From Calcarisporiella thermophila CBS 279.70 (lineage: Eukaryota > Fungi > Calcarisporiellomycota), in the NCBI RefSeq assembly GCF_041956535.1, contig NW_027192216.1:138274-202273 (forward strand): DNA of 64,000 nt, read 5' to 3'. A model generated the notes under the pieces. That model was given only the letters and a program-made list of their open reading frames with translations, made no database searches and had not been told where the DNA came from. Made by a program: the position numbers and the translations under genes. Below are positions 15,796-46,074 of this stretch, piece after piece. Each line of letters starts with the position of its first letter. Within the stretch, counting starts at the first letter, position 1.

Positions 15796-15869
15796 TGCTC
15801 GTGACAGGGATCGAACCTGTGACCTTGGCGTTATTAGCGCCACGCTATAACCAACTTAGCTACACGAGC
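15796..15869 (-). tRNA. tRNA-Ile(AAT)
   Basis: GCTCGTG/CACGAGC acceptor stem; anticodon arm TGGCG-CTAATAA-CGCCA; T arm ACAGG-TTCGATC-CCTGT; T-rich terminator downstream. Confidence 0.97.
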
Positions 15870-15956
15870 CGATTTCGAATTTGTGTTACTAAAATGAGTT
15901 TTTGTTACAAGCAATTCATTTTGGCAGTCACAATAGAGCTCGAGAGCGGGGTTCTT

Positions 15957-16296
15957 GGGGGAGGGTTAGTGTAGTGGACTATCCCTGGTATGCCGATGAG
16001 AACGGCGTGGGTTCTAATCCCGCTTCCCCCACCAGCACTTACCCTTAGTTTGTGACTGCTGTCCACTTGATCAGAAATTGAATCTTCATTATTGAAAGCA
16101 TCCCTCCTACGATAAGTACAAAGATTACATCGGTTTCACGTACATGCTATTCACGACAACTACGATACACGCATATCGATTGAACGCCTATCGATCACGG
16201 ACCTATATCTCGCTATGTTAAGTCCATTGACATTAACTTCATGTAATATATGGAAATTAAATAAAAAGTTTCCATTGAAGATCAAAAAAAAAAAAA
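15957..16296 (+). mobile_element. tRNA-derived SINE, copy 1 (youngest in the stack)
   Basis: tRNA-like head with A-box-like TAGTGTAGTGG and B-box-like GGTTCTAATCC ending ...TTCCCCCACCA; body; AATAAA; GATC(A)13 tail; perfect 17-bp TSD TCGAGAGCGGGGTTCTT (15940-15956 / 16297-16313). Confidence 0.92.
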
Positions 16297-16313
16297 TCGA
16301 GAGCGGGGTTCTT

Positions 16314-16535
16314 CATATCTCTCTCTCTATATCACTTATCAATAATACCCACAGTTAGTTGAGTTTTATTACCCATCTACCCATTTGAAGAGAAAATTCG
16401 TTATGATCAACTTACCCCGAATTGCAATACCGCGTTAATATCTAGCTTTTCTCTCATTCTATTACTTTTAATAATGTAACGGTTGTACTTTAGAGTCTTC
16501 TTAAACAATAAAGACTCACTTTTGATTAAAAAAAA
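16314..16535 (+). mobile_element. Poly(A)-tailed retroposon 3' end, element B
   Basis: Ends AATAAA...GATT(A)8; TSD AGAGCTCGAGAGCGGGG (15935-15951 / 16535-16551); near-identical copy on the minus strand at 45015-45245. Confidence 0.85.
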
Positions 16536-16556
16536 GAGCTCGAGAGCGGGGCGACT

Positions 16557-16814
16557 ATATATATGGCCGAGACATACTCTAGAAATTGAACTATAAGCTA
16601 CTTCGTTACAACTTCTCCGAAATGCAGTAAAATGTGACAATGAAATACTTCCATATATACTTCTACTTATTCTGTATCTTTCTCGGTACAAGCAATTCCA
16701 CTCTACAAGGCTGGCCAGAAGCATTGCCTAGGTGATTTTGGCATAAAAGTCTACCCTGCTTTTAACTTGTATAGGAGACATTTTAATAAAGGTCCTTTGT
16801 TTAAAAAAAAAAAA
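16557..16814 (+). mobile_element. Poly(A)-tailed retroposon 3' end, element C
   Basis: Ends AATAAAGGTCCTTTGTTT(A)12; perfect 18-bp TSD CTCGAGAGCGGGGCGACT (16539-16556 / 16815-16832). Confidence 0.82.
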
Positions 16815-16827
16815 CTCGAGAGCGGGG

Positions 16828-17094
16828 CGACTCCCTTAGGCGACACCCGTCCATGAGAGTGTGCCGGGTTTTTCTCAGGATTCAACCGCTATCAATAGTA
16901 TAGCAATAAACGAGTAATATCAAGCGGCTACAAAAATAGCTAGCAAAAATCCTTAGGTGAAATCCAACCACAATAATGGGAGGCCAGGGGCAGTACTTGG
17001 GTGATTTTGTAGAAGTCTACCCTTCCATTCACTCCAGATAAAAAAATCGAGTGGATGTAAAAAAAATACCTCCCAAGGGAGAAAAAGAAAAAAA
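16828..17094 (+). mobile_element. A-tailed retroposon 3' end, element D (related to C)
   Basis: Shares GGCCAG...GGTGATTTTG...AAGTCTACCCT with element C; A-rich tail; followed by CTCGAGAGTGGGG. Confidence 0.72.
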
Positions 17095-17103
17095 CTCGAG
17101 AGT

Positions 17104-17418
17104 GGGGAGAGGAAATAATATAGTGATCCATCTCAAGAATGCCGAAAGGAACGCCGTGGGTTCGAATCCCACTTCCCCCACCAGCATTCACTTCTAGTTT
17201 GAGACTGCAGTCCGCTTGATCCATTTCGAGTCTATATTACCGGGAAGAAAGCTGCCATTGATAACATCGATCTCACCTGTATGCTTTTCGCGACAAAAAC
17301 GAAACACATCTATCGATCAAGCCTTGTATCTCACAATGTTAAGTCTATGGACACAAAACCTCATGTAATATACATGGAAATTAATAAAAGTTTACATTGA
17401 TTGATCAAAAAAAAAAAA
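17104..17418 (+). mobile_element. tRNA-derived SINE, copy 2 (older, diverged)
   Basis: Aligns by eye to 15957-16296 along its length (GTGGGTTCGAATCCCACTTCCCCCACCAGCA...ATGTTAAGTC...CATGTAATATA...GGAAATTAATAAAAGTTT...GATC(A)12); degenerate downstream TSD. Confidence 0.88.
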
Positions 17419-17565
17419 TACTCAAAAGCGGAGCAGGAGGGTAGTGTACGATATACATGCAATACTCGCGATCAACATGACGAAAATAGCGCGATATCAT
17501 GACACATACAACAAAGGTTTCGACCTTCCTAATACTCTCACCATTTCGCTGGTTTTTTATTTTTA

Positions 17566-18370
17566 TGTTATAGCCTCTCTTGACTAATGTAAGCCCACCC
17601 ATCATATTTTATGGTATCTCACCCATCTTCTACGTCCATCTAGGTGGTGTTATTCTCTATACTTTATTATTAAGTAATTAATAAAATCAATCTTCCGCTT
17701 TCGGCTAGTTTGTACAAAGTCTCCAACCGACCATAACAATTTGGTGGGACGTGAGAGACACTTCAGGGAAGCAGAACCCTGAACGAACTCTATAAAAATA
17801 ACTAAACGTATCGTTATGAGTGCACCAAAAGTGATTGACAGACGCATTGCTACCCCAACTCCGTTGCACGGTTCTCCTGCAGAAGAACCAATGAGTTGGC
17901 TGCAAAATTTTGAAATGGTTAAAAAAGCCAACGGTTGGGTGGATGAAACCGCCTGAATGTTGTGGAATCACTGTGTCTGGGTAGTGCTGCTACATGGTAT
18001 CAACGTAATGAAGCATAGTTGGACTCCTGGGCAAAATTTAGAGAAGAATGCTTGAAGTATTATCGCTCGGGAGTACGGAAGGAGATTTGGAGGACTGCAT
18101 TATGGACAAAGCGTCAGAGGTCAGAGGAATCGGTAGATTCTGCTGCGTCCGAAGCCCTAGCCCTTCTTAAGAGATTCGGAATTCAGGGAAAGGAAGAGAG
18201 AAACCAGTACTTTGTGGATGCTCTACGCCCCGAATTGGCTGCTAAATTGACCGAATGGATGACTGAGAAGGTGAAGACGGGATCGACACCCGAAGGAATA
18301 CGAGGGGTCGACTCTAACGAGCAGGATGAAGAGAGATTCCCTTCAAATTGGGTACAGTTCCACTCATAGG
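17566..18370 (+). mobile_element. Ty3/Gypsy LTR-retrotransposon relic: putative 5' LTR, PBS and disrupted gag
   Basis: TGTTAT...ATAACA (17566-17738) followed by PBS TGGTGGGACGTGAGAG at 17742; gag from ATG 17816: PLHGSPAEEPMSWLQNFEMVKKANGW.../LGSAATWY...SWAKFREECLKYY...RQRSEESVDS...FVDALRPEL, with a frameshift and a stop. Confidence 0.8.
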
Positions 18371-18584: not shown

Positions 18585-18982
18585 ATTCAATCGACCCATC
18601 TGCACTCTGGCGCTCAGTCTGTAACGTAGTCTTCCATTTCTCCTTTCGTACTTCCGATCAATAATACTTCAGGAACATGACCCTGAATTTGGCCCTGATA
18701 TCCATTTTTGACTTTAAACTGGTACGGTGTGGCTGCACTTCTCAGCACAATGATCCCACAACATTAACGAGAGGTCATCCGAGTAATCGTTGGCATTTTT
18801 GAAGAGTTCGAAATTCCGAAGCCAACTGGGTCTTCCATAGGAGAGCCGTATCACGCCGTTAGGGCAACAATGCGTCTGTCAATCACTCTTGGTGTACTCA
18901 TGATAATACGTTCGGTTATGTCTTATGGAGTTCGCTCAGGATTGTTTCTATGAAGTGTCTCCCACGTCCCACCAAAATGTTA
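18585..18982 (-). mobile_element. Second, inverted and more decayed copy of the same Gypsy 5' region
   Basis: Reverse complement has TAACA-TT-TTGGTGGGACGTGGGAGACACTTCA, GTGATTGACAGACGCATTG and the translation AKFRVMFLKYY*SEVRKEKWKT, homologous to the copy at 17734-18130. Confidence 0.8.
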
Positions 18983-39457: not shown

Positions 39458-40888
39458 CTAGAATGCTACGTGCATTTGCCTCTCGTCCATTCCCATAATA
39501 GCAAAATCGGGTTTGATGTCGTCGTGGAAAGCAGGACGCCCTGCAGCAAGGAACTCGGGCTTGCCTCCAATGCCTCCACTTGCATTGGGCGCCCATTCGC
39601 CCATCGGGCAGGCGCAGTTAGAGGAGGCCCCGGAGGGGACCTCGAGCAGGAACTGATTGATTTCATCGCTGGAAATCGACTCGGAGTTGAGCAGGAAGTC
39701 GGTCATGTTCAGGGTGGAGAACGAGACGTAGGGGTGGTCGACGCCGATCATGGTGGAGAGCGAATGGCTACTTTCACTCTCAGCAGTGCTCAGAGGGCTC
39801 AAACCCTCGACCGGCGAGGTCTCTTTCTCCTCTTCGCTGCTGCGACGTTCCATGGACAGAGGCGGGGGGAAGAAGTGCTGCCGCGGGTGTTGCTCGGGTT
39901 GCTCTTGGGGTGGCAGAGAGGACTCCTGTGGTTGCCGATGGTGTGGCTCTTGCTCTTGTTGCGGGTGCTGCGGTGAGTGCTGTTGATGGTGGTGGTGGGG
40001 GTGGGGGTGCTGGGGTGATTGCTCTGGATGCGATGGGGGTATCTGTGAAGAGTGCTCGTGCGACTGGTGATGAGAATGGTGATGGAGTGGGTCGTGGTGC
40101 GGCGTTTGCTGTGGAGTGGAGGGCGGAAAGGAGAAGGAGAGATTGTGGAGCGGTTGAAGCTGAAGATGGTTGAAGCCCGCGAGGAGGGGAGAGATGGGCT
40201 GCGAGGGCGGGGAAAGGAGCGGCTGTGTTGTAGGCGAGGGGAGGGACCTGGCAGGCGATGCCACCGAGCTCGACGCGGTCGTACAGCTGGAGGGCTTGAG
40301 CGAAGATCGGCGCGCATTGCACAGGGGACACTGCCGGACAAACCGCGCAATGAGCTCCTTGGGGATCCAGGAATACTGGCGCCGAACCTGGTGCGAGCAA
40401 AAGTTTTCAATTGTCAGTCCATGTCGTGAGAGGAGAGATTGTTGGAGAGTAAAAAGAAAAAAAAAAGGCAAAGGAGCACAAAGGCGCAGGTCACATACCA
40501 ACGCGGAGGTTTTATCCCTTCCGCCGTGCGAAGCCTCTCTATGGCACTTGACCATGATTTCGTACATTTGCTCCCTTACGGCCACCGGCTTTCCCTCATG
40601 GTAGACGCGGTCCTGCACCAGGGTGAACATCTTCTTGGCCCAGAATCGGAACTGTGCCGTCGACATCTGCGTGTTGCGCGGATTGAGCAGCACGGCAAGC
40701 ACCTGTCGATACATGGCGCGGGTCAGAATGGCCTTGTCGCGTTTCTTTGGCGAGAGGGATTCCAGGTAGTCGTCCACGATCGCCTCGAACTGGCTCTCTG
40801 TTGGGAAGCTGTTAAGCGTGGGGGCGTTGAGGTAGCCAAACGAGGGGGATCCGCTAAACTGGTTGCAGTAGGCTTCATAGTATTCCAT
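39458..40888 (-). CDS. Protein with integrase-type H2C2 zinc-binding domain and His/Gln/Pro-rich tail; one in-frame intron (40498-40388)
   Basis: CHREASHGGRDKTSAL|VRRQYSWIPKELIARFVRQCPLC; upstream AQFRFWAKKMF; no integrase catalytic core. Confidence 0.85.
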   Translation of the reverse strand: MEYYEAYCNQFSGSPSFGYLNAPTLNSFPTESQFEAIVDDYLESLSPKKRDKAILTRAMYRQVLAVLLNPRNTQMSTAQFRFWAKKMFTLVQDRVYHEGKPVAVREQMYEIMVKCHREASHGGRDKTSALVCDLRLCAPLPFFFLFTLQQSLLSRHGLTIENFCSHQVRRQYSWIPKELIARFVRQCPLCNARRSSLKPSSCTTASSSVASPARSLPSPTTQPLLSPPSQPISPLLAGFNHLQLQPLHNLSFSFPPSTPQQTPHHDPLHHHSHHQSHEHSSQIPPSHPEQSPQHPHPHHHHQQHSPQHPQQEQEPHHRQPQESSLPPQEQPEQHPRQHFFPPPLSMERRSSEEEKETSPVEGLSPLSTAESESSHSLSTMIGVDHPYVSFSTLNMTDFLLNSESISSDEINQFLLEVPSGASSNCACPMGEWAPNASGGIGGKPEFLAAGRPAFHDDIKPDFAIMGMDERQMHVAF

Positions 40889-45014: not shown

Positions 45015-45296
45015 TTTTTTTTGATCAAAGTGAGCCTTTATTGTTTAAGAAGACTCTAAAGTACAATCGTTACATTATTAAAAGTAATAGAATGAGAGAA
45101 AAGCTAGATATTAACGCGGTATTGCAATTCGGGGTAAGTTGATTATAACGAATTTTCTCTTCAAATGGGTAGATGGGTAATAAAACTCAACTAACTGTGG
45201 GTATTAGGGAACGACTTGATAAGTGATATGGAGAGAGAGATATGAGGGAAGAGAAGGGGTAGTAGTAGGGGCTACTGCGTCAATCCAGTTCTAGAG
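45015..45296 (-). mobile_element. Second copy of retroposon element B (longer 5' extension)
   Basis: 45015-45245 is the near-identical reverse complement of 16314-16535, including the GATC(A)8 tail. Confidence 0.88.
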
Positions 45297-45312
45297 CCGC
45301 GTCAAAAAAAAT

Positions 45313-45915
45313 TTTTTTTGNNNNNNNNNNNNNNNNNNNNNNNNNNNNNNNNNNNNNNNNNNNNNNNNNNNNNNNNNNNNNNNNNNNNNNNNNNNNNNNN
45401 NNNNNNNNNNNNNNNNNNNNNNNNNNNNNNNNNNNNNNNNNNNNNNNNNNNNNNNNNNNNNNNNNNNNNNNNNNNNNNNNNNNNNNNNNNNNNNNNNNNN
45501 NNNNNNNNNNNNNNNNNNNNNNNNNNNNNNNNNNNNNNNNNNNNNNNNNNNNNNNNNNNNNNNNNNNNNNNNNNNNNNNNNNNNNNNNNNNNNNNNNNNN
45601 NNNNNNNNNNNNNNNNNNNNNNNNNNNNNNNNNNNNNNNNNNNNNNNNNNNNNNNNNNNNNNNNNNNNNNNNNNNNNNNNNNNNNNNNNNNNNNNNNNNN
45701 NNNNNNNNNNNNNNNNNNNNNNNNNNNNNNNNNNNNNNNNNNNNNNNNNNNNNNNNNNNNNNNNNNNNNNNNNNNNNNNNNNNNNNNNNNNNNNNNNNNN
45801 NNNNNNNNNNNNNNNNNNNNNNNNNNNNNNNNNNNNNNNNNNNNNNNNNNNNNNNNNNNNNNNNNNNNNNNNNNNNNNNNNNNNNNNNNNNNNNNNNNNN
45901 NNNNNNCCCTCCCCC
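45313..45915 (-). mobile_element. Probable SINE insertion(s) hidden in the assembly gap (N 45321-45906)
   Basis: Right gap edge reads GGGGGAGGG on the minus strand (SINE head); left edge reads C(A)n tail; flanked by direct repeat CCGCGTCAAAAAAAAT at 45297-45312 and 45915-45930. Confidence 0.72.
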
Positions 45916-46001
45916 CGCGTCAAAAAAAATGTTAAAAAGGTAAAAAATTAAAAAAATTAAGGATTCTCTATGTTTTGGGGGGGACTGAATTATGTGTAAC
46001 A

Positions 46002-46074
46002 GTTCCTATGGTCTAGTGGTTAGGACATTCGCTTTACACGCGAAGGATCGCCGGTTCGAACCCGGCTAGGGACA
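46002..46074 (+). tRNA. tRNA-Val(TAC)
   Basis: GTTCCTA/TAGGGAC acceptor stem; anticodon arm TTCGC-TTTACAC-GCGAA; T arm GCCGG-TTCGAAC-CCGGC; T run downstream. Confidence 0.97.

Follow-up and report, generated by a model that had tools for sequence, protein, structure and literature searches.

A putative landing pad for retroposons upstream of tRNA genes in the fungus Calcarisporiella thermophila

Two reviews of integration directed by RNA polymerase III (Pol III) list retrotransposons without long terminal repeats (non-LTR elements) from dictyostelids only, with TRE5, TRE3, NLTR-A, and NLTR-B as examples (PMC5911963, PMC5006619). TRE5 elements insert 40-54 bp upstream of tRNA genes and in the opposite orientation, and NLTR-B elements insert at 39-64 bp (PMC5911963, PMC5006619). 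The subject of this work is a stretch of 64,000 nucleotides of the fungus Calcarisporiella thermophila CBS 279.70 (contig NW_027192216.1, positions 138,274 to 202,273 of the forward strand; hereafter the window), in which a tRNA-Ile gene has on its upstream side a stack of poly(A)-tailed retroposons, separated by copies of one short target site and enclosed in a repeat resembling a solo long terminal repeat (LTR). Taken together with related loci elsewhere in the genome, the stack points to a landing pad at which non-LTR retroposons would integrate upstream of tRNA genes in a position- and orientation-specific manner, a reading to which we assign a probability of about 0.85.

The closest analogue is TRE5 (TRE5-A of Dictyostelium discoideum) together with NLTR-B of Polysphondylium. 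As in those systems, the elements are of non-LTR type with a second open reading frame (ORF2) joining an apurinic endonuclease (APE), a reverse transcriptase (RT), and a zinc finger, here put together from separate pieces; their distance to the tRNA gene on its upstream side is fixed and does not depend on the target sequence, and their transcriptional orientation is opposite to that of the gene. The host genomes are compact in both cases, and LTR elements coexist closer to the tRNA gene (DGLT-A there, the LTR-like repeat here). The differences concern the distance, with a nick at ~64-72 bp and a 5' junction at 78-88 bp in place of 40-54 and 39-64 bp, and the host, which is an early-diverging fungus and not an amoebozoan. 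Moreover, several short interspersed element (SINE) families derived from tRNA share the targeting in C. thermophila, whereas there is no SINE among the dictyostelid tRNA-targeting elements in PMC5911963 and PMC5006619. Binding of the ORF1 protein to TFIIIB was shown for TRE5-A, and TRE5-like targeting requires a functional B box, or TFIIIC; the fungal system is known from sequence. The likeness to the TRE elements is probably convergent.

The stack upstream of tRNA-Ile

The gene that anchors the landing site, tRNA-Ile(AAT), is located on the minus strand at window positions 15796-15869, as reported by ARAGORN and seen in the sequence, with a T-run terminator downstream on that strand. On its 5' side there is a spacer of 14 nt, then ~68 bp of a repeat starting with TGTTAC, and then the target sites and inserts. 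This tRNA-proximal arm (15884-15951, plus strand) belongs to the solo-LTR-like repeat of ~376 bp and is ~79% identical to a sequence called module 1, which abuts other tRNA genes. The distal arm (17434-17738, plus strand), recognized by sequence matches, ends with ATAACA, and the repeat is bounded by identical ATTTG copies at 15879-15883 and 17739-17743, its 5-bp target-site duplication (TSD). The stretch from 15936 to 17433 holds five retroposons with A tails, every one of them on the plus strand and set between six target-site copies, and in each of the five the poly(A) end is distal to tRNA-Ile, which means that every insert points away from the gene.

Target-site copy 1 (15936-15956), nearest to the gene, contains both GAGCTCGAGAGCGGGG, the TSD of the element named B, and TCGAGAGCGGGGTTCTT, the TSD of the element named SINE1. 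It is followed by SINE1 itself (15957-16296), which is full-length, 340 bp long, and ends with an A13 tail. Copy 2 (16297-16313) matches copy 1 at 17/17 positions, and its final 5 nt already belong to the start of B (16309-16535), a 5'-truncated element of 227 bp with an A8 tail. Copy 3 (16536-16556) holds the B duplication (16/16) and CTCGAGAGCGGGGCGACT, the TSD of element C (16557-16814; 5'-truncated, 258 bp, A12 tail). Copy 4 (16815-16832) agrees with copy 3 at 18/18 positions and ends with the first 5 nt of D (16828-17094), which is 5'-truncated, 267 bp long, and carries an A-rich tail. The TSD of D, CTCGAGAG(C/T)GGGG, is matched at 12/13 positions between copy 4 and copy 5 (17095-17107, CTCGAGAGTGGGG). 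Outermost is SINE2 (17108-17418; 311 bp, A12 tail), an old and diverged SINE identified from its identity to SINE1 and to young copies, and beyond it lies the degenerate copy 6 (17420-17433, actcaaaagcggag), with 10/14 matches to copy 5. Measured from the tRNA 5' end, the tRNA-proximal TSD edges of the stack are at 66-70 bp and the 5' junctions of the elements at 82-87 bp. An earlier reading of the window from its letters alone (the sequence-only reading) had described five A-tailed inserts pointing away from the tRNA, each followed by another copy of a common core, and had placed their insertion about 66-87 bp upstream; the sequence bears out both statements, the inserts being 227-340 bp long.

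The core in question, the 12-mer TCGAGAGCGGGG, occurs exactly at 15940, 16297, 16540, and 16816, and with one mismatch at 17096. In the 28.2-Mb genome five occurrences were counted, four of them in the stack, and a reversed control sequence also occurs five times. Since the 12-mer is found just once elsewhere and is no commoner than the control, the core separating the inserts is target DNA and not element sequence. The sequence-only reading had asked whether the core accompanies copies at other loci; it does not, and the other TSDs are mostly unrelated to it.

The nesting of the duplications reveals the order of events. Because the first five bases of B form part of the SINE1 duplication, and those of D part of the C duplication, SINE1 must be younger than B and C younger than D. 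The fidelity of the duplications drops going outward (17/17, 16/16, 18/18, 12/13, 10/14), and so does the typical identity of each insert to other copies of its own family, which is ~94% for SINE1, ~86% for B, 84-87% for C, ~85% for D, and ~71% for SINE2. Subfamily structure blurs the middle of this identity series, while both ends are clear: SINE1 is the youngest insert and SINE2 the oldest. Since the stack sits inside the LTR-like repeat, this repeat must have been in place before any of the five units. The SINE family was active fairly recently, as some of its copies are 99% identical to one another. Nested and outward-decaying patterns are also present in the stacks at three further loci (L007, L041, and L052). 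The nesting, the outward loss of repeat fidelity, and the displacement of older inserts by newer ones had all been put forward by the sequence-only reading; each of them holds, and serial insertion with outward ageing is supported by these data.

Distance and orientation across the genome

The window contains a second stack (45015-45929, minus strand), upstream of a tRNA-Val(TAC) gene at 46002-46074 on the plus strand. It consists of a B-family copy, assigned by family match (45015-45296, minus strand), behind a poly(A) element (45312 to ~45915, minus strand) which is mostly masked as N (45321-45906) and whose visible 5' end resembles a SINE head. The duplication of the latter, CCGCGTCAAAAAAAA, is 14-15 bp long, with the proximal edge 72 bp and the 5' junction 86 bp from the tRNA. 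Thus, the geometry is that found at tRNA-Ile, and the TSD is different.

For a genome-wide view, 90 loci (designated by L numbers) were gathered around copies of SINE, B, and C, among which 35 distinct 5'-complete SINE copies have enough flank (1.5 kb) for measurement. A tRNA gene is present 78-110 bp from the SINE 5' end in 19 of these 35, and it is divergent every time; a divergent tRNA gene within 1.5 kb accompanies 27, and in none of the 35 is the nearest upstream tRNA in the same orientation. Compared with a uniform spread over 1.5 kb, the clustering of SINE 5' ends at tRNA genes gives P = 6e-26, and they are found there more than 600 times as often as expected by chance across the genome, even when ~1,500 tRNA genes are assumed. 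The copies are therefore not placed at random with respect to tRNA genes, the outcome on which the sequence-only reading had staked its proposal. When elements of all families upstream of tRNAs are considered, 63 point away from the gene versus 6 that point the same way (P = 4e-13). Many different tRNA genes are involved (Gly, Thr, Pro, Ser, Asp, Leu, Val, Ile, Phe, Ala, Lys, His, and Arg).

The duplications at these loci are 11-18 bp long and mostly bear no sequence relation to one another, which argues for targeting by distance, not by sequence. In addition, at least 10 of the 19 spacers between tRNA genes and adjacent SINEs are free of any recognized repeat. The tRNA-proximal TSD edge, where target-primed reverse transcription (TPRT) would start, is found 64-76 bp from the tRNA, mostly at 64-72 bp. 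At one Ser and one Leu tRNA, both with long variable arms, the gap counted from the 5' end is the usual one (85 and 78 bp), and this weakly suggests a distance ruler anchored at the 5' side of the tRNA gene. The other families behave similarly. Full-length C copies have their tRNA-like heads ~75-88 bp from tRNAs, as has one long B copy, and behind a tRNA-Lys gene (L041) a 5'-truncated long interspersed element (LINE) with a zf-RVT reading frame is stacked with a B copy; the TSD of this locus, ACTCATGGTATTGCCACGG, occurs three times, starting 73 bp from tRNA-Lys, and the LINE copy stands at 73/92 bp.

Looking from the side of the genes, 63 tRNA genes of ~1459 rough candidates were scored genome-wide, and at least 12 of the 63 have a listed element upstream in divergent orientation, as found by cross-matching by hand. 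None of the 5S rRNA genes scored, just four in number, adjoins a listed element. For 20 SINE loci that lack an obvious tRNA, an Rfam scan covering 5S, U6, and other Pol III genes returned tRNAs only. On some contigs the tRNA genes are strongly clustered (for example C8:936-1123 kb, C29:5-151 kb, C10:204-214 kb, and C24:86-89 kb), and the retroposon families cluster in the same places.

The element families and the LTR-like repeat

The four families of the stack are represented in the genome by at least 147 (SINE1), 79 (B), 62 (C), and 61 (D) candidates, counts which are first-look lower bounds. The SINE1 candidates are 92-96% identical. The first 77 nt of SINE1 (window 15957-16033) constitute a tRNA-like head with A and B boxes and a CCA end, in which the A-box-like TAGTGTAGTGG and the B-box-like GGTTCTAATCC are visible. 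ARAGORN reports the head as tRNA-like in many copies, and the heads stay under the threshold of the Rfam tRNA model. SINE2 is ~69% identical to SINE1 and ~71% to young SINE copies. B is a 5'-truncated copy of a longer non-autonomous family, the longer 5' ends of which are present in L033, L041, and L043. C is a 5'-truncated copy of a second SINE family, whose full copies carry a different head derived from a CCA-ended tRNA, ~90-95 nt long (in L064, at 1405-1500, and in L066, L068, L065, and L024). D represents a third SINE-like family, again 5'-truncated and retaining just the last ~20 nt of its tRNA-derived head; a full CCA-ended head joined to D-like sequence was found in L052 (1622-1709), and the loci of this family were judged from coordinates alone. 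CCA ends are thus seen on the heads of the SINE families, and two different tRNA heads are in use (window 15957-16033; L064:1405-1500; L052:1622-1709).

The 3' ends connect these families with LINEs. The last 90-190 nt of B match the 3' untranslated region (UTR) that follows a LINE reading frame with zf-RVT, and the last 110 nt of C are common to LINE tails, that is, to 3' UTRs after reading frames with zf-RVT. Over its last 55-60 nt, the SINE shares 83-84% identity with the tails of longer elements, of which one abuts a masked body; RT coding by the longer element with the SINE-type tail was not seen. A stable hairpin just before the poly(A) was predicted in the SINE (z-score -3.1) and in the LINE-type tail (z-score -4.0). 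A 3' hairpin common to all families was also considered and rejected, being clear in the SINE and the LINE-type tail, present but not significant in B, and absent or weak in C, D, and SINE2.

The protein domains come from separate visible pieces, the LINE bodies being mostly masked as N and no single full-length copy having been read. Exo_endo_phos was detected in L085, under the Pfam cut-off (20.9 vs 24.5 bits), the start of RVT_1 in L076, and zf-RVT in L041, L086, L087, and L007. Pooled from these pieces, the domains suggest that the autonomous partners are L1-like LINEs with APE, RT, and a zinc finger. In a protein search, the C-terminal piece of the LINE reading frame found relatives in C. 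thermophila only. Stretches of N stand where LINE or other retroelement bodies are expected (window 45321-45906, L008:1853-2806, L046:2032-3212, and many other loci). Truncation of 5' ends is frequent and an A usually precedes a recognizable TSD, both of which fit TPRT with priming on poly(A). The CCA ends suggest that the SINE heads originated when the reverse transcriptase switched template to a mature tRNA. In comparison with LINE/SINE pairs of the stringent type, the elements share the tRNA-like head with A/B boxes, the body, a 3' end that carries a hairpin and has ~83% identity to a LINE tail, the poly(A) tail, and TSDs of 11-18 bp. They differ in that the heads keep the 3' CCA of mature tRNA, at least two tRNA heads are used, and the SINEs are position-specific for tRNA genes.

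The repeat that encloses the stack is a second kind of tRNA neighbor. It is ~380 bp long, starts with TGTTACGAG and ends with CCCGTAACA, lacks poly(A), and has TG..CA ends with a short inverted repeat. Its TSDs are 4-5 bp long (GAAA in L075, AAAA in L052, ATTTG in the window). At least 18 copies with 88-94% identity are present, and there are at least two related families, starting with TGTTACGAG and TGTTGTGAGG. At ~14 tRNA genes of varied kinds the repeat begins 7-14 bp from the mature 5' end, and it is always the same end that is proximal. In the window it begins 14 bp from tRNA-Ile, with the retroposon stack inserted ~68 bp inside it. The sequence at 17420-17611 matches other genomic places at 72-75%, each of them beside 3' parts of a family designated E.

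Two loci help to separate the two distances. In L075 (311-1048), the LTR lies between tRNA-Glu and an older SINE, and once it is removed the gap is 11 + 67 = 78 bp; a newer B-family copy landed inside this LTR at the usual distance. In L052, where the repeat was recorded at 724-1104, two LTR-like copies stand in tandem; the inner one is intact, and the outer one carries a stack whose TSDs are nested and decay outward. Both loci point to two registers, in each of which the distance is counted from the tRNA gene, whatever sequence currently fills the place. That the LTR-like repeat hosts the target, and that there are hence two insertion registers, is new in this analysis.

The repeat is best read, though this is not proven, as a solo LTR left by a Ty3-like element that targets the start site of Pol III. 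Its likeness to Ty3 consists in a position 7-14 bp from the 5' end of the mature tRNA, close to the presumed start of Pol III transcription, in its solo copies, and in its 4-5-bp TSDs. Among 40 scored copies no LTR pairs were found; one copy is located 2.75 kb downstream of a long RT reading frame on the same strand of contig C9, and no link of the repeat to an internal gypsy-type gag-pol was found. The window sequence following the repeat was tried as a primer-binding site and dismissed, as it matches the 3' end of none of 50 tRNAs and the flank resembles a low-copy host gene family. The retroposon register at ~80 bp upstream, for its part, recalls the first Ty1 hotspot. However, the stacked elements differ from both Ty1 and Ty3 in being poly(A) non-LTR retroposons that use TPRT and not an integrase, and from Ty1 in showing one sharp peak with fixed orientation in place of a periodic 1-kb window.

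Several neighboring features may be recorded here. An unrelated low-copy repeat starts at ~17734-17738, beyond the distal arm. A low-copy repeat of ~160 bp, ~80% identical between its copies, forms an inverted pair at 17739-17900 and 18827-18982 (minus strand), separated by 1 kb; it occurs once more on another contig and contains an apparent gene start (ATGAGTGCACCAAAAGTG...). A further repeat, designated F, starts with TGTTACAACTCGAGTCACATATC 10-23 bp from tRNA 5' ends (L020:1424-1500; L040:3201-3231; L072:1-649; L003, minus strand, ~1100-1170) and ~75 bp on enters an ORF1- or gag-like reading frame without a Pfam match. At 39461-40888 (minus strand) there is a reading frame of 476 codons with an integrase zinc-binding domain (PF17921) and homologues across Mucorales, Mortierella, and Kwoniella, which looks like a domesticated integrase-derived gene.

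Proposed mechanism and its alternatives

In the proposed mechanism, L1-like LINEs with APE, RT, and zf-RVT would be guided by something bound at, or organized by, the tRNA gene. By analogy, the guide would most likely be the Pol III pre-initiation complex (TFIIIB/TFIIIC). The endonuclease would nick the tRNA-sense strand ~64-72 bp upstream of the mature tRNA 5' end, where reverse transcription would be primed on the poly(A), and the second strand would be cut 13-18 bp further out. Every insert would then point away from the tRNA, with the 5' junction at ~-80 to -88. At least three SINE-like families with heads derived from CCA-ended tRNA and LINE-like 3' ends, together with the B family, would be mobilized in trans by the LINEs and inherit their choice of target, the SINE RNAs being taken up via the LINE-like 3' ends. 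As the target is duplicated at each insertion and the tRNA-proximal copy keeps its distance to the gene, the site would be regenerated, the next element would land there, and older ones would be shifted outward. LTR-like elements would use the second register, 7-14 bp from the tRNA 5' end; at tRNA-Ile the LTR would have come first and the stack would have been built inside it. The geometry, the orientation, the independence of sequence, the reuse of the site, the LINE domains, the shared 3' tails, and the 5' truncation are read directly from the loci, and we infer the trans-mobilization of SINEs and the identity of the tether as Pol III factors.

The main open alternative to direct protein contact is a chromatin ruler, in which the LINE endonuclease prefers the edge or linker of a phased nucleosome upstream of active tRNA genes. 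The nick at ~-68 and the junction at ~-85 fall outside the usual TFIIIB footprint and near the expected start of the first upstream nucleosome, Ty1 in yeast makes use of the nucleosome found upstream of Pol III genes (PMC5911963), and the distance does not depend on the underlying sequence. However, the very narrow range of the proximal TSD edge (mostly 64-72 bp) and the strict orientation are nearer to TRE5 than to the broad periodic pattern of Ty1, and such a ruler is regarded as unlikely. Much less probable is an endonuclease that reads a TCGAGAG-like motif in the LTR-like repeat beside tRNA genes, with only an indirect link to the tRNA. Duplications with a (C/T)TCGAGAG-like core were indeed found in L001, L007, L008, L011, and L024, those of L003 and L008b share ATTCAG(A/G)AAGCGCGA, and all motif-sharing TSDs occupy homologous positions of one repeat family. 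It is this homology of the target, namely of positions in the LTR-like repeat by the tRNA, that accounts for the recurrence of TCGAGAG-type duplications at four to six loci. Most TSDs are unrelated, the SINEs in spacers without a recognized repeat (at least 10 of 19) keep the same distance, two different LTR families receive insertions equally far from the tRNA, the intact repeat copy in L052 has no insertion at that position, and the tRNA-Val site uses a sequence of its own. A sequence-specific endonuclease is therefore unnecessary for the recurrence, does not fit the other loci, and is largely refuted. L1/Tx1-group and R2-type LINEs reportedly insert inside multicopy RNA genes in a sequence-specific manner, as surveyed by Kojima and Fujiwara. 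The likeness to them (compare Utopia, PMC4640811) is that non-LTR elements are associated with small RNA genes, but those elements recognize DNA sequence inside the gene or repeat, whereas here an arbitrary target at a set distance outside the gene is used.

Purifying selection was also considered, with integration at random and survival only in harmless places such as the upstream regions of tRNA genes. The genome is gene-dense (28 Mb), and safe-haven arguments are standard for compact genomes of this type (PMC5006619); nevertheless, neither a peak of ~10 bp in width, nor a fixed orientation, nor the repeated use of an identical target of 13-18 bp can result from selection, which makes this explanation very improbable. 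Hardly any weight is left for the view that the array results from duplication, recombination, or an assembly artefact and not from five insertions. What speaks for it is L024, where the flanks fail to pair as expected, which hints at recombination between stacked copies, while the five units belong to four different families, each unit with its own poly(A) tail, their duplications are nested in a way that only serial insertion yields, and independent stacks with other TSDs exist. In L024 (740-1500), a copy of the SINE family of C lies at the usual position in the LTR-like repeat, and the flank on its left does not pair with the one on its right but agrees with the TSD of a SINE lying 400 bp further out; stacked copies may have recombined at this locus. 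As main causes, we consider selection, sequence specificity, and recombination excluded.

Several points count against position- and orientation-specific integration guided by the tRNA gene. A look-up of public sequencing runs in which empty alleles might be seen listed none. The SINE sample consists of the 30 best matches plus chance finds and is not the entire family. For eight of the 35 copies, no tRNA was found within the 1.5 kb of flank examined, and eight more are 215-1441 bp away from one, several of them visibly displaced by later insertions; in L002, L007, L010, and L017 the non-adjacent SINEs are outer members of stacks, bordered on the side facing the tRNA by another element's poly(A) and TSD. 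An exception in orientation is L086 (1501-1731), where the 3' end of a LINE, with a tail like that of C, is found 48 bp upstream of tRNA-Glu(CTC) and the LINE runs in the direction of the gene. The LINE bodies are mostly N, and no full-length LINE and no ORF1 was identified. Finally, the distance of ~68/85 bp is beyond the classical TFIIIB footprint, so that a direct TFIIIB tether is less obvious than for TRE5 (~48 bp) or Ty3.

One piece of a LINE reading frame shows 100% identity to a protein of C. thermophila, and one gene of the window has 92% identity, over its whole length, to another protein of this species. The assembly of strain CBS 279.70 carries the accession JAZGQU (PMC11393059). 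The host had been assigned to Mucoromycota by the sequence-only reading. This is correct in the broad sense, and phylogenomic analysis places C. thermophila as sister to the rest of Mucoromycotina (PMC10079182), but NCBI gives it a phylum of its own, Calcarisporiellomycota. In the literature on fungi and Mucoromycota, including papers that present or use the C. thermophila genome, no such targeting was found described; most subscription journals were outside this coverage, and an earlier description is possible. The data point to what is apparently an independent, TRE5-like, genome-wide targeting with SINE passengers and a second LTR register. With somewhat better than even confidence, it can be proposed that an early-diverging fungus independently evolved a TRE5-like system, in which an L1-type LINE tethered to Pol III, at least three dependent SINE families with heads from mature CCA-ended tRNAs, a register of ~68/85 bp, and a Ty3-like LTR register of ~10 bp would combine to leave an ordered and datable record at each tRNA gene.

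According to the reviews of 2016 and 2018, tRNA-gene-specific integration of non-LTR elements has so far been known from dictyostelid amoebae alone (PMC5006619, PMC5911963). The present system would, if the proposal is true, be a second independent case, with a different distance, with SINE passengers, and in a small, culturable, thermophilic fungus, and the tethering of target-primed reverse transcription to Pol III genes would have evolved repeatedly. It would offer a new system for the study of how a host complex positions a LINE endonuclease. The order of elements in the arrays may give the relative ages of transposable element families without a molecular clock, and the reuse of single sites would provide many natural replicates of one integration event.

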